A stretch of 63,376 bases of DNA, counting the filler, from Octopus bimaculoides (lineage: Eukaryota): assembly GCF_001194135.2 (NCBI RefSeq). It is 8 parts of 8 records of this genome, joined end to end, with 100 filler letters (N's around TTAATTAATTAA, not from the genome) between each part and the next. Parts side by side here need not be neighbours in the genome. Positions count along the whole stretch, not along the records: positions 46,366 to 49,750 come from NW_026416895.1; 7 more parts are not named here. The stretch is one strand, 5' to 3'. Position 1 is the stretch's first letter. Every line of letters begins with the position of its first letter. The notes under the pieces are model-generated. The model had not been told where the DNA came from and did not search any database. It saw only the letters and a list, made by a program, of their open reading frames with translations. The translations under genes and the position numbers were made by a program. Of the stretch, positions 7,886-49,750 are shown piece by piece.

Positions 7886-10800
7886 CTGCTAGCTTGCCCC
7901 TCAATTTACAAATAATGAAATTCTAACTTGAACTTCATGGTTATGTGGTATGCCTTACAAAGTATATGCAACAATATGCATATGTTCAAAATTTCAAACA
8001 AATTGTGGAAAAATACAGTAAAAGTTTTTAAAAATAAAATAAAAAAAGAAATGGCAAACTAAAACATCACCAGTAGAATTGTATAAATAATTAAATTTTT
8101 TCATTTTAATTATATTTATTGTATAGAATTTACATTTGTCTTAATATTTAAAATACTCAGACAAAATTGTCTTTAAAATAAAATAAACCTTATTCATAAT
8201 AAAGTGAAAATTAATGTATCAAGTAGCATTGGCAATTTGAGTCTATTAAGATTAAAATAATACTACTAGTCTCATATGACAGGGGTAAAATGTCACAAAG
8301 AAATATTTTCAAAAATATCTTTAAAAAAAAATGCAGTAGTTTTAATACTGAAACAGAGAAGTGTGAGTTGAGAATACCAACATTTCAAGACAAATTCCTC
8401 AGCTATTCATGATACTATCTTTCAGAATTCCTGGCATTTATTCAGATGGCCCAAACTAGATTTCTTAGATGAAAAATAGAGAATAGAGAATTATATTTCT
8501 AAAGAACTATCAGCATATACTCAGTTACAACAAAATCATCATAGCAGTAATTAAAAAAAAAAAAAAGGCTTGAGTAGAGTGCTTATCAGCACAGTGGCAT
8601 TCTACTGTCAACAGGAGCAGCCTACAAAGATTGCATTTTGGGAGAGGATTGAGGACAATTTATGAGAGTAGAAGAACATGATCAAGAGTGAGCAAAATAA
8701 ATTATATAGCAGTTTGGCAGTTGATATGCAATTCTATCAGTTCAATAAAGTTGTTTAGCCCCAAATCAACCTTGACCGAGCAGATCATGAGCAAAGGGTA
8801 TTCTAACTGTAACCTTCTGACTTTTCTTTTTCAGACTATAACTAAGGCTTCATTATCCAATGTGTCCGTTCTTTATTTAGGATGGCAAAGTGTGATTAAA
8901 GAACCTGCTTTTTCTATTTAGTCAAATGACCATGATGCTTTATTCTCAGCTTAGAAAATATTGAATGGCCAGGTGTTGATCTGAACATAGTCAATCGATT
9001 GATGCCCAAAAAATTACAACCCTCTGCAACATTAGTTAGATACATTACTAACCTATGCAAATAAATCTGCTTTTTAGTGTCCTGAATATAAGATAGTTTC
9101 CAGATATGATAATAATGCTCATGATTAATGCTGAAGTGTTGGCCATTTTCTTTTTTTTTTTTTTTATGTTTTAGGGAAAAAAAAACAGCACCCATTATCC
9201 TTTTTGGAACCTGATACTGGTAAGAGGAAGAGAGGAGGTTATTCTTAGATAGGAGACCTGGCCCAAATGCTTGCAATAGAGTGAACTTCATTAAAGGCAC
9301 TCAAGAGACTGGTGCTGGTGTTAAATTGGACAACAGATTACTTTAGCATCTGTCAGTATGTTCACTCCTGAAGTGGACTAACATATTTCTTTCATTATCA
9401 TCCATTTAGGTCTTGTAATACAATCACTGGTCACACACTAGACAGAGTATACTAAAACCCTCCTGACAAAACAAAATATATTCCAGTAAAAACAAAATGA
9501 GATAGTCCAACTTCTAAAAAGAAATTTAGGATTCTCTGCTTGACAGAAGGATATATATGTCACAGACACCAACTGGAGCAGTCATTTTCTGACAGCAATT
9601 TCAATGTATCTAATGGGAAAGTTAGGGGATCTTCTCTTATGTAAAAAGTAGTTTAAAAGTATCAGTTACACAGAGGTGTAGGGTTCACTAAGGATCATGC
9701 GCTTTAGTGAGGTGACAGTACAATCAGCTGAAATATCTTTTCCAACAAAACAAAGCAATTGCTTTAATATTTGACAGTCACAATGAGTTTGTTGGATTGG
9801 CAATTTGTAATTATAAAGAAACATCAAGAAGTGGTCTGCTCTAACAAGTAGAAATCCTTTTGTACATCCCAAGTATATTAATACTCTGCTGATTACAAAA
9901 TAAAATGAAAGACCAATTGCATGAATCAAATCAGTTAAGTGGCTATGTTATTTATGAATACTGTAAATAAAAATGTCAGATGTTCCTCATAGGTATGTAA
10001 ATTATCTTTGTGCAATAAAATTTTTAAATTGTTGAAATCGCTCCCCTTTTCTTTGAGAGTTGCTAATAATTGTTGCTAGTGTTTTGCTTTCTTTCCACAA
10101 CTAAGAGGGAGAGTTCACTTAATTCAGAATTTTTAGCATAAAGCACTCAATACATCATCCCTTAAATGATTACTCTACATTTCTAGTATGACTATAAAGG
10201 AGTGTCTTGGTAGTTAAGCTTTTCTTCCTTGTTTTAAATATTCAGTACTTTACATTTCTTTCACATGAGTAAATCATGAAAATGCCACTTCCATCTATAG
10301 CCTCACAACATTCGCCTTTCTTATAGCTTTTACCCCTCTTTTATGAAATTTCTATTTTTGTCTTGACCCTTCTGAAATTGATTTACCACAATGCTCACAG
10401 TAAATCAGGAGAGGAAGTAAGAAAATTTCCTATGTAGCAGGTTATGAGGGGGAATATGGTAATTAGTGGCAAAAAATATTCTGACAAATTATTATATACT
10501 AACAAAGAGATATGCCTTTTCTCCACATCACATCCTACTTCAACAGACCAACGATAATGCAAGAACAGACTGATATATTGCATTCAACAGTGTAATGGAA
10601 ATAAGCAATTTTATGTCACAAGAGTGAGAAGGGCTTGGAATAGCAGTTAGCTCACTAGCAGGTGACATTCTTTTTTCTTACAAAAGTTTTTAGGTTCCAA
10701 TCAATCTCTAATATTAAAGACTGGAAACTATTTACAGCTGCACCAGTATTGCCAGCAAAGGTAGTGGAAAGTATTTAAATCCAAGCTATTATCAAGTATT

Positions 10801-11646
10801 AAATATTTGTCATCTATAACATTCTCAAAGCAAAAGCCCTCAAATTCAAATACTTAAAAGTTGTTAATCATAGTACCAATTACTAAATAACTAAAGTGTA
10901 AAGCATCTCGTATATCCAAAAATTAACATGAAGCCCTACATTCTTTCTACAACTAAGTCTGAAAACTACTTTTATCCTTATAAATGTTCATTAAAGTAGT
11001 GGTTTAGTATTTTTAAAATCTCAAAAATTTGTCCAAAAAGAATTCAACAGAAAAAACAAACAATACTATACTCTATATAAAAACAAAGTTATATTCTCAA
11101 ATAAGATTCCTTGAAGCTTGTTAATTTCTAAAGAATGCTTTTGGTTAAGATAAAATGGGAACAAGAAGAGGAGGGACTGAATGAAAAAGCAAAAATTAAA
11201 AAAAAAGATTGACACCAGAAACCAGTTGAGATGTATTTCTCCTATATGTAACATTAATAATGAACCCTTTTGACTAAATACAAGGACAATATTTGTAGGA
11301 GAGTGTACAGATGATCAAATAAGCCAAGTATCTATCTTACTCGGTCTTAATAATTAAGCTGATGGTTATTTTAATTAATGAAATGACTGCTAGTACAACA
11401 TACAAGAAGGTGAAAGGTAAAAAAATATTTATATTGCAAAAGTACAAATTGCATCAATAAATAGGCATTGCTCCCATAGCATTAGAGTCAGTTTACAGAA
11501 AATACAACCAACTGTGATACAGCTTTCTGCATAACTCTGTAAGAGAGAGAGAAATGAAGGAAAGAGAGGTGTAGTGTACAATTAGCACTTTCTGTTACTA
11601 ATATCACAACAGAGTTGACTGTCCTAGTTCTTCATCCACAGTAGCT

Positions 11647-46365: not shown

Positions 46366-49300
46366 CGGATTATAATATCTTCAGATGTTTCCTCTTCAAT
46401 ATGTCGAGGTATTTCATAAATATTGTTGTCTCTATCTGTTATATAAACACATTCACCAATTATGGTTAAATGAGGTCTTGGAATATAATATTCCAGACCC
46501 ACATATATTATTCCTTCTTTTATTCTTATCCTCCTCACCAAAGACTTTTCCCTGAACCATTCCACAAAACACCAACCATACCACCCTCCAGACTCCTTCT
46601 TCTTCTCCTCCCTCCTCAAAACAACAACATCACCAACAGATGTGACTCCCACATCGTCCACCCCTTCATCTCCCTCCAACCTTTCCCATCTCCTCATCTT
46701 CCCACAACACACTTCATCTTTACATTTCCCATCTTTCATATCAACCACATCCACATAATAAGAGTCAAAGATGTCGCTGTCATCACAACAATAGTAAACC
46801 TTGTTGTTCTCCCATATTCTTTCGTATTTCTTGTCTCTCTCTTTTCGAGTCATGTCTCTAATATAATGACCACCACACACGAGTTGATTGTCGTTGTATT
46901 TATAAATCCTGTTGTAGTATTTCTCAGTTTTAAACGACAAAGATCTCTGTTGAAGACCCTCATTTCTCTCCCAAAGGCGACAATGAAACATTCATCTGTC
47001 CACCGACATATGTCCAGTGGTTCTTCTTCTTCTTGTTCATGTTGAAGTATGTCCACTGTTGTTGTTGTTGTTCTGATTAATGTGAAACTTTCTCGAAACA
47101 TCAACGCACTCACATTCTCATCTAACTTAATTAGTTTACTGTTCCGGTCCCTAATGTCCCAATAATCATAACAAACAGGTTCCTCGAATGCGGGAATGGT
47201 AAAAGGGACCATTGCTGTTCTATATGGAAGTCTCCTCACTGATATTTCATCAATTCCTAAATTATTAATCTCCGCTATGTAATTACCACATCTCAGCTTT
47301 AATCTACCTTTACTAATTATTTCACCTGATTTACCTCTTCTTCCTCCATCTCTATCTCCTCCACTGTATTTCAATTTATTAATTGATTCCTTACTGAATA
47401 TTTCCTTGTTCATTTCAGATGTAATGGAAGGGAAACAAAGACCAGAATCAAGATTTAATAACAACACAGATTCCAGAATGTTCACATGGTCCCCATCAAT
47501 CTTTATGCAATGACATTCAATCAATTCAATATGTTGACACCAGTAAATACTCCCCACTTTTCTCCATATTACACCATAAGGGATGAGACTTGTCTAAGCT
47601 TGAAATTTCTTCAAATCTTTTCCATTCAGTTGAAATATTTCTTTTCTTTTAGGAACCGTGGCCATTATGTGTGTTTCCTGTGTAAAACACACACCACCAA
47701 CTAAACTTGCCACATTTCTGTGACATAGCAACTCCCCGTCTTCATCAAATATTTTAACATTTCCATTATTGGCTTTTTCACACACAACTGTCTTTCCTTC
47801 ATCAGAAATATCAAAATCTTTTACTTGAACAGCAAATTCGTCTGTTTGTAAACGAGCAACCGGGAAGCTTTCTCGATTCACCATAAACAACCCTTCAACA
47901 TACAATTCATTCCTTCTCCTCCTGGGGCTTCCAACAAACCTTGGTCCTTTACAGTCTATACTGAAGAAATATACTTCATGTTTATAAATTCTTTTATTTA
48001 AAAATATTCTCTTGTATTCCCCATTCTGGGTCAAACACAAAATGTTTCTATATCGAGATAAACCAAAACGTTACTGCCACTCACCATAAATGTACAAAAA
48101 ACTGTCATCAATTGTCATTGTGTCATCACCTAAATCATACTTCATGTAGTGTCTGACTGAATGTAAATATTGACCATCACTGTTGAAGAAAATGATGAAT
48201 CTCATGTTTAAGACAATGATGACATCTTCAGAAGTAACTTTAATATCCCAGATGTCATCATCATCATTTCCATCTTCGTCTCTCCTTATTAATGGCTCAG
48301 GTATGTCTATTTGTTTTATTTCCTTTACACTCGAATGTATTTCATCCATATCAACAAAATACAAATGACTTTCATCTCCCATTTTACTAAAAACCATTTG
48401 ATTGTTTGATAAAGAAGCCACACGTTCATATTTATTTCTCGTTTGGTAAATTACCAACGACAATGGAAATTCCACTTTTAATGTCAGTAGTTGGTAATTA
48501 TTATCATCATAATAATCCCTTTTCGTAATGACCAATGTGTTTGAGTGCCATCGACACATTCTAATATAGAAATAAGCATTCACTTTCATAGAATCCAAAA
48601 CTTGACCATCCAATGTAAATATCTTTATGTTTTTATTCCCCTCGTCCCATACTGCAACCAGATTATTTTCAGTAATAACCAAAGATTTAATCTCCACTGG
48701 TTTTTTGTCTCCCAAATGTTGAGGGAAAGGAATATGTCTTCCTTTATCAGAAACTGTCAGATCCTGTAGATATAAAGAAGATGACAACATTTCACTGACA
48801 GAAATGTTTCTGGAAAATACATCTACCAGGTCGATATAATAATTAAGTTGATTATTTGTAACGAGATCATTAACCAACAAATTATGATCGTTTATAGCAA
48901 ACATACGGCTGTTCTCTATAAGATATACAAACATTTGGTCAATAGATCCACCGTAGAGATTGAGGGGACATTAAAACACTGGGGACCATCTTAATACTAC
49001 AAGGATGATGATCACCAGTGCCATGACCACCACTACTAATGTGCTTGAAGAAAGCTTCTGGTTGGAACTCTAAACCACTGGACACCATCTCAATACTACT
49101 ACTACTACCATCACTTCCACTACTCTGACGATGTGCACCGCCATGACCACCACCATCTATTCTAGTGTTGTACTGAAATGCTTTTCCCCTAGTAACAATT
49201 AATAGCTTTTCTGTTTCATTGTGTATTGATAAGGATTTCACAAAAAAAGGGATATTAATTGTCTTAATTGTTTCAACTTGATTATGATAATTGATGGCTA

Positions 49301-49750
49301 AAATATCTAAATGTGATGGTTTATCACAATAACAAATAATTTCACCTTCACCCATCTTACACACCCGTACATAAGGCTGCCTTAATGATACATTTCTCAC
49401 TGTCTTTGACAGGTTTCCGATGACCCTCAATTGCTTCTGTAGGGGTAATGTGACACCTATTTGATTAGAATCCCATCGACATATATCCGTAGCTGTAGAC
49501 GGCAGAGATAATCTCGACACAATGTCTCCTTCATTAGAAATGTATAACAAGCAATCATGGTTGATGTCGGACACCACCAACTGTCCATTCTCCAGATTAC
49601 ATATTTCGCCAATGATAAGTTTTTTGTCATTCTCCTTTTCTTTGAGTCGTAGATTTAGATTTCTGATATAAGGATTTTTCAGGTGTAAACAACAGCCAGA
49701 CGACCGGTCCTGATACTTGTAAAGAAGGACCCTGTTAAGTTGAGTGTCCG
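46366..49750 (-). pseudogene. Large intronless coding block (~1,130 codons) of tandem NHL-like/beta-propeller modules; two in-frame stops and two frameshifts; both ends run into gaps
   Basis: The frame is open from the gap edge at 49750 (DTQLNRVLLYKY...KLIIGEICNLENGQLVVSD). Disruptions: a +1 shift near 48965-48985, TAA at 48071-48073, TAG at 47594-47596, and a shift near 46930. ORFs 48071-48934, 47594-48040 and 46850-47557 share one frame, and the sequence between them is open. Recurrent motifs: DICRWD / MCRWHS / DICRWT, and NKNIKIFTLDGQVL / NGNVKIFDEDGELL (NHL-like). Confidence 0.8.

Follow-up and report, generated by a model that had tools for sequence, protein, structure and literature searches.

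Positions 46366-49750 (record NW_026416895.1) of a 63,376-nt stretch of Octopus bimaculoides DNA (the window; parts of eight records of assembly GCF_001194135.2 joined end to end) very probably hold a disabled copy of an octopod gene for a protein with multiple NHL-type β-propellers, namely part of the interior of a pseudogene whose inactivation was recent. Between 46368 and 49748, the minus strand of this piece carries a chain of reading frames of ~1,125 codons, which two in-frame stops and two frameshifts divide into five stop-free segments (A to E, Table 1). Segments B, C and D occupy a common frame with only single stops between them, and A and E lie in another frame. Over the whole piece the B-D frame carries 27 stops, the A/E frame 82 and the third frame 96; all 27 stops of the B-D frame fall outside the B-D stretch, except the two lesions. 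The GC content of the piece is 35% (31-44%), and open stretches this long cannot arise by chance in DNA of such composition. A first-pass annotation of this DNA had described one minus-strand frame split over five open reading frames (ORFs), three of them in frame and separated by single stops, and segments A-E confirm this description. The peptide motifs quoted there were also recovered from the translated piece, namely LVVSD..HDCLLYIS (49580-49536, minus strand), NKNIKIFTLDGQVL (48637-48596, minus) and NGNVKIFDEDGELL (47767-47726, minus), together with the recurring C-R-W, of which there are three copies (DICRW, RMCRW and DICRW).

The frame reaches both edges of the piece, with an assembly gap on either side. 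For the searches described below, segments A-E were joined into a conceptual product of 1,123 residues with an X at each lesion. With BLASTP this product gave a single colinear match, from its first to its last readable residue, to residues ~650-1750 of octopus proteins of ~1,800 amino acids, and its residues 1-1120 were covered in one match against more than 20 proteins. Protein alignment to the full-length family indicated that ~650 N-terminal and ~54 C-terminal residues are absent from the piece, and that the piece contains no internal intron. Its tandem-repeat content is minimal, as had been noted before; this had been read as a sign of recent function or recent duplication, but little can be concluded from it, as the piece is coding sequence throughout.

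Lesions in the reading frame

The lesions were called by aligning the DNA of the piece to two O. vulgaris paralogues, with protein alignment for context, and all four sites proved to be coding and conserved in the paralogues. The first-pass annotation had taken the two frame junctions for 1-nt shifts; the net change of frame is indeed one base, but physically the junctions are deletions of 14 and 10 nt relative to the paralogues. Nor could its view of the locus as a hidden working gene be upheld. The copy is unable to make the full protein, because stops have replaced a conserved K codon and a conserved W codon and two deletions shift the frame. Besides these two deletions, the alignment contains eight indels (3, 3, 3, 3, 6, 6, 3 and 21 nt), none of which disrupts the frame. 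The branch connecting the piece with the two paralogues carries 200 substitutions; under the mutation spectrum observed, a stop would result from 6.1% of random changes, so that ~12 stops are expected on a wholly neutral branch, where two were observed; this branch includes the lineage to the two O. vulgaris copies, and about half of the ~12 may be the fairer figure. The deficit of stops is suggestive rather than strong, and it points to a frame that was apparently protected for most of its history and was broken only recently.

Extensive adenosine-to-inosine (A-to-I) recoding of transcripts is established in coleoid cephalopods. Given such heavy editing, the G-to-A change at stop 2 might have been tolerated before the frameshifts arose.

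The piece belongs to an octopod protein family

The joined product retrieved 66 protein clusters (at 90% identity), all of them octopod, from O. bimaculoides, O. vulgaris, O. sinensis and Argonauta hians. They are annotated as "uncharacterized" or "hypothetical" throughout, most have 1,300-1,900 residues, and the best identity to the joined product is 77-79%; they include O. bimaculoides LOC106878473/XP_014783180.1, O. sinensis LOC115226288, A. hians Ahia01_001420400 and the O. vulgaris hypothetical proteins encoded on OX597841.1. The joined product is 75-79% identical in amino acids to its octopus relatives and 39% to those of Argonauta, and the DNA of the piece is 89.3% identical to the O. 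vulgaris P0002 gene over 3,394 nt. The piece has in common with the octopus family the four modules described below, the linker and the C-R-W motifs, and differs from it by the two stops, the two frameshifts and the absence of both ends. A family profile, compared exhaustively by HMMER with a library of 1.84 billion representative proteins, retrieved no more than 37 clusters (50% identity level). Every strong cluster whose source name was looked up was octopod; the profile also reached NHL-containing proteins, and a cuttlefish protein appeared in the weak tail. These searches support the earlier suggestion of a lineage-expanded family.

Uninterrupted ORFs from ATG to stop were found in P0005 (O. 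vulgaris, 5,397 nt), P0042 (O. bimaculoides, 5,139 nt) and P0045 (O. sinensis, 5,154 nt). Hence, the coding region is a single exon in the three intact relatives checked, in agreement with the intronless structure first proposed for the piece. Judging by these relatives, the missing N-terminal part consists of a region of ~150 residues followed by two more propeller modules. The first-pass annotation had placed a lost N-terminal domain in the adjoining gap; the N-terminus is indeed cut off at the edge, but what is lost is not a TRIM-like RING/B-box, as in full-length relatives these ~150 residues are hydrophilic and Lys/Glu-rich, with no Pfam match and no Cys/His zinc pattern. A simple hydropathy scan of the full-length relatives revealed no hydrophobic stretch fitting a signal peptide or a membrane span.

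Literature searches, which included six LOC identifiers, found no paper on an octopod multi-propeller family. The NHL fold itself is not new, and databases already list the genes as uncharacterized predictions; no earlier description appears to exist of a single-exon chain with about six NHL propellers, of its restriction to octopods or of its evolutionary dynamics.

Modules and fold

Structure prediction with AlphaFold2 (AF2) on the whole joined product, using 41 aligned sequences, gave an all-β model with four well-predicted blocks, between which lie low-confidence linkers and inserts. When this model was searched with Foldseek against the PDB, multi-propeller proteins were on top (IFT-A, megalin/LRP2, DDB1 and Trm734; expect value (E) ~1e-15). 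Module 2 was then modeled on its own (residues 320-625 of the joined product, window 48778-47861, with X at the stop), and the prediction, with a predicted local distance difference test (pLDDT) of 82.9 and a predicted template modeling score (pTM) of 0.84, has 24 strands, i.e., six four-stranded blades. In the Foldseek search of the PDB with this model, the first 13 ranks all went to NHL domains, those of Brat, Thin, TRIM2, Mei-P26 and NHL-2 (E 9e-10 to 2e-8; template modeling (TM) scores 0.61-0.73); the top hits, from Brat, Thin, TRIM2 and Mei-P26, have E ~1e-9 and TM scores of 0.63-0.73. In addition, a sequence profile of module 2 (13 sequences) searched against the PDB sequences matched NHL domains in 12 of 13 cases (Thin, E 1.1e-5; Brat, E 5e-4; TRIM71, TRIM3 and TRIM2, E ~1e-3), the thirteenth match being insignificant (E 0.33), and the match covers the canonical NHL blade motif (..vtennliavyDknnknikiltfDGqll..). 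With the whole-protein profile, NHL matches against the PDB sequences were only sub-significant (E 0.05-1). The fold check proposed in the first-pass annotation (structure prediction and Foldseek) yielded a predicted propeller fold, with NHL domains as the nearest structures.

The other modules were tied to module 2 by profile-profile comparison: module 3 matches it with E 1.3e-6, module 4 with E 3.5e-6 and module 1 with E 6e-6, and module 1 also matches module 4 (E 2e-9). Altogether, the four modules of the piece and the two of the missing N-terminal region are mutually homologous, with E values of 2e-9 to 8e-5. Sequence and models together thus suggest that intact proteins, of ~1,700-1,900 residues, have a leader of ~150 residues and then about six NHL-type propellers, of which four are in the piece, and the earlier count of about four successive modules is right for the piece itself. 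Module 4 lacks its last blade (~54 residues), which lies beyond the piece edge. In module 3 a basic, Gly-rich insert (47455-47177) is predicted to be disordered. Part of the linker between modules 1 and 2 can be aligned with the segment that precedes the propeller in a cuttlefish protein of the RING-B-box-NHL type.

In module 1 the β-strands span 49613-49158, with pLDDT 70-80 in the first half, and the module is interrupted by a Gly/Ser-rich variable insert (49157-48996). In the protein alignment the length of this insert differs greatly among paralogues: P0001 has ~45 extra, duplicated residues, P0005 and P0008 are without ~80 residues, and an insertion of 21 nt at 49019 occurs in the piece alone. 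The insert looks like an expansion-prone surface loop.

Table 1. Segments, lesions and modules of the piece, in window coordinates
Feature	Position	Strand	Remarks
Probable pseudogene fragment	46368-49748	minus	~1,125 internal codons of an octopod multi-NHL-propeller gene; both ends cut by piece edges; colinear BLASTP match
Segment A	49748-48942	minus	Stop-free, 269 codons
Segment B	48970-48074	minus	Stop-free, 299 codons
Segment C	48070-47597	minus	Stop-free, 158 codons
Segment D	47593-46853	minus	Stop-free, 247 codons
Segment E	46991-46368	minus	Stop-free, 208 codons
In-frame stop 1	48071-48073	minus	TAA; AAA in both O. vulgaris paralogues (conserved Lys of W-E-K)
In-frame stop 2	47594-47596	minus	TAG; TGG in both paralogues (nearly invariant Trp of K-V-W)
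Frameshift 1 (A/B)	48952-48970	minus	14-nt deletion after 48966; conserved codons SQVKR lost
Frameshift 2 (D/E)	46925-46935	minus	10-nt deletion after 46930; conserved codons T-I-R lost
Module 1, propeller-like	48969-49661	minus	LVVSD..HDCLLYIS and DICRW; AF2 strands
Inter-module linker	48740-48952	minus	GGSID..FVYLI..AINDHNLLVNDLVTNNQLN..DLVDVFSRNI..SEMLSS; highly conserved across the family; pLDDT <50
Module 2, complete six-bladed NHL-type propeller (24 strands)	47891-48739	minus	NKNIKIFTLDGQVL and RMCRW; stop 1 inside
Module 3, propeller-like	47156-47791	minus	NGNVKIFDEDGELL and GGVCFT; AF2 strands; stop 2 inside
Module 4, propeller-like	46368-47137	minus	DICRW; AF2 strands, pLDDT 70-87; frameshift 2 inside

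Duplication, turnover and selection

In a distance tree the piece stands beside the O. bimaculoides copy P0001, and next to these two lies a clade of 13 copies that are from O. vulgaris only and are all on one 29-Mb chromosome. Two O. vulgaris copies that are 12.6 Mb apart on this chromosome (OX597841.1, at 9.57 Mb and 22.16 Mb) have ~1.2-3.4 kb in common upstream of the gene and ~250 nt downstream of it. This common flanking sequence indicates duplication at the DNA level, and retroposition as the origin of these two copies was thereby ruled out.

Selection was gauged by the ratio of nonsynonymous to synonymous divergence (dN/dS). In the older orthologue pair P0042/P0045 (O. bimaculoides/O. 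sinensis; dS 0.18) dN/dS is 0.40, i.e., the pair is under purifying selection and the family is therefore functional. The ratio is 0.83 between the young paralogues P0002 and P0005, and 0.88-0.90 between the piece and either of them. With a dS of 0.11, the piece is closer to the O. vulgaris copies at synonymous sites than P0042 and P0045 are to each other (0.18), though its nearest protein neighbor is P0001 of O. bimaculoides; gene conversion between paralogues is a possible explanation.

The piece may not be the only casualty. The predicted "intron" of P0002 (locus L001, 11052-11507, O. vulgaris OX597841.1) coincides with a change of frame, and when the intact P0005 protein was aligned to the P0002 gene by TBLASTN, two segments in different frames abutted at 11052-11059. 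By this alignment, P0002 is probably another damaged copy, in which the gene predictor hid the frameshift under a predicted intron. Taken together, the damaged young copies, the species-specific clade and the constrained old pair make the turnover of the family, as read from its sequences, a birth-and-death pattern. The species-specific bursts and the high dN/dS of young copies would fit a role in recognition or conflict (e.g., immunity), and would equally fit relaxed constraint after duplication.

Alternative explanations

Several points weigh against the interpretation of the piece as a recently disabled propeller gene. The piece lies between two assembly gaps, and some or all of the lesions, which were called on the assembly, could be assembly errors; apparently intact young paralogues have a dN/dS of ~0.85, so that a high ratio alone is no mark of a dead copy; and P0002, which served as an "intact" comparison gene, probably hides a frameshift itself. 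As to the fold, the AF2 model of the whole fragment is only moderate (pLDDT 58.7), and the Pfam NHL family (PF01436) stays below threshold both in the five pieces of the frame and in full-length relatives; no other Pfam family was significant in the five pieces either, or reached the threshold in nine full-length or partial relatives. If the lesions were indeed errors in a gap-flanked, poorly assembled contig, the locus would be an intact, working family member, and its nearly intact frame (8 of 10 indels in frame, and two stops against ~12 under full neutrality) would find a simple explanation. We regard this as improbable, since the frame is broken at four independent places and in three ways (two stop substitutions at conserved codons, a 14-nt deletion and a 10-nt deletion), with short repeated bases apparently on either side of the deletions, a picture that differs from the usual homopolymer or consensus errors, and other damaged copies exist in the young clades of the family. 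It is still harder to believe that the copy is expressed, either rescued in part by A-to-I recoding or as a truncated product with one or two propellers. Editing of UAG to UGG at stop 2 would give back exactly the conserved Trp, and the individual modules are, in the predicted model, autonomous folds; however, editing would not bring back the Lys at the TAA, and frameshifts of 14 and 10 nt are beyond its repair. The promoter and the start codon of the copy lie outside the piece.

The abundance of single-exon copies could also be accounted for if the ORF were part of a transposable element or an endogenous viral element, and many near-identical, intronless copies do lie along one O. vulgaris chromosome (OX597841.1). 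We consider this extremely unlikely. Neither the pieces nor the full-length relatives matched a transposase, reverse transcriptase, integrase or capsid family in Pfam; the flanks of the intact copy L002 contain only microsatellites, with no terminal inverted repeats, long terminal repeats or second ORF (the flanks of the piece itself being gaps); and an older orthologue pair is maintained under purifying selection in two species. A search of a viral structure library (BFVD) returned generic propellers only. The transposon interpretation was rejected after the inspection of ORFs and repeats around the intact copy, and the viral one after the BFVD search; the match to a transposon or viral ORF that the first-pass annotation had named among its refuting conditions was looked for in these three ways (Pfam, BFVD and flank inspection) and was not found. 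A disabled copy of a multi-propeller gene thus remains the interpretation that we favor for the piece.

Relation to known propeller proteins and origin

The octopus modules have the fold of the NHL domains of TRIM-NHL proteins (Brat, Thin/TRIM32, TRIM2, TRIM3, TRIM71/Lin41, Mei-P26 and NHL-2), i.e., six four-stranded blades in ~280 residues, but are only 9-13% identical to them. Furthermore, TRIM-NHL proteins have one C-terminal propeller, whereas there are from four (in the piece) to about six (in intact relatives) per octopus chain, no RING, B-box or coiled coil was detected with Pfam in the intact octopus relatives (1,576-1,914 amino acids), and the C-(R/Q)-W strand motif is specific to the octopus family. 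With the multi-propeller scaffolds DDB1, IFT-A (WD40 tandems), LRP2/megalin (YWTD arrays) and Trm734 the octopus proteins share the serial arrangement of propellers in one chain. These scaffolds, however, are built from other propeller classes (WD40 and YWTD), with 7-10% identity and a global TM score of 0.1-0.17, so that the likeness is architectural only.

Closer relatives were found within the cephalopods. The cuttlefish (Acanthosepion pharaonis) protein CAE1315789.1 has RING, B-box and NHL Pfam domains and a single propeller, which matches a whole octopus module (91% probability, E 9e-7, 26% identity) in an alignment that takes in the C-x-W strand and the pre-propeller linker. In addition, the C-terminal ~110 residues of octopus "MIB2-like" proteins, which combine ankyrin repeats with a RING (Ank-RING), match the beginning of the first propeller of the family at 47% identity (E 5e-24). 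These proteins form a cluster (P0087, P0089, P0091 and P0095; O. vulgaris/O. sinensis, 12.0-Mb contig) with ankyrin and RING (zf-C3HC4_3) domains, and in the gene model P0060 an Ank-RING part is joined to several propeller modules. That the MIB2-like matches are an artefact of the inclusion of P0060 in the profile was rejected, as P0087 matches P0005 independently. The arrangement seen in P0060 and the MIB2-like proteins could represent either the ancestral form of the E3 ligase or a chimera created by annotation. Both the cuttlefish protein and the Ank-RING proteins thus have an E3-ligase RING with one or a partial propeller, in contrast to the family of the piece, which has about six propellers and no RING. 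On these comparisons, the most likely history would be that the propeller of a cephalopod RING-associated NHL-like protein was multiplied in tandem within one exon, and that the resulting gene lost the RING and then expanded in octopods.

Possible role of the family

The locus of the piece has no mechanism of its own, being a broken copy, and as a dead copy it is of little consequence; the family to which it belongs is more interesting. NHL domains of TRIM-NHL proteins recognize protein or RNA ligands, and sequence-specific RNA binding in TRIM-NHL E3 ligases is ascribed to the top face of the propeller. Judging from the fold and the ancestry of the modules, intact relatives would be multivalent binding platforms, whose propeller faces recognize protein or RNA ligands, a role that we propose with moderate confidence, and an immune role of the family is plausible. 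A more specific scenario, which we offer as a conjecture that is rather unlikely to hold in full, is that the family constitutes an undescribed set of octopod-specific, probably cytosolic, giant receptors with six NHL propellers, derived from a RING-NHL E3-ligase ancestor. Such receptors would form an intracellular recognition system (antiviral, RNA- or protein-sensing) that diversifies by species-specific birth-and-death under diversifying selection, analogous to the expanded TRIM and NLR repertoires, and the piece would be a recent casualty of this process.

The family comprises dozens of ~5.4-kb single-exon octopod genes without domain annotation, and its combination of constrained old members with fast-evolving, species-specific young clades is a pattern that genes of recognition or conflict typically show. 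Little is understood of innate immunity in cephalopods and of lineage-specific "dark" genes, and once they have been given a fold, a TRIM/RING-NHL-like origin and a map of their modules, the proteins of this family can be annotated and tested.

Other features of family members

Two features seen in relatives of the piece are recorded here. P0041, an O. bimaculoides member of an older subfamily, has a long acidic tandem repeat (ESEDQIF/ESEDQLSV units) inserted ahead of the last blade, which is absent from the subfamily of the piece. At both O. vulgaris paralogue loci (L002 9394-9582 and L001 ~9379-9601), a near-palindrome of ~190 nt, with 90-nt arms that are 79% complementary and a loop of 9 nt, precedes the start codon by 420-600 nt; it could be a miniature inverted-repeat transposable element or a regulatory hairpin.

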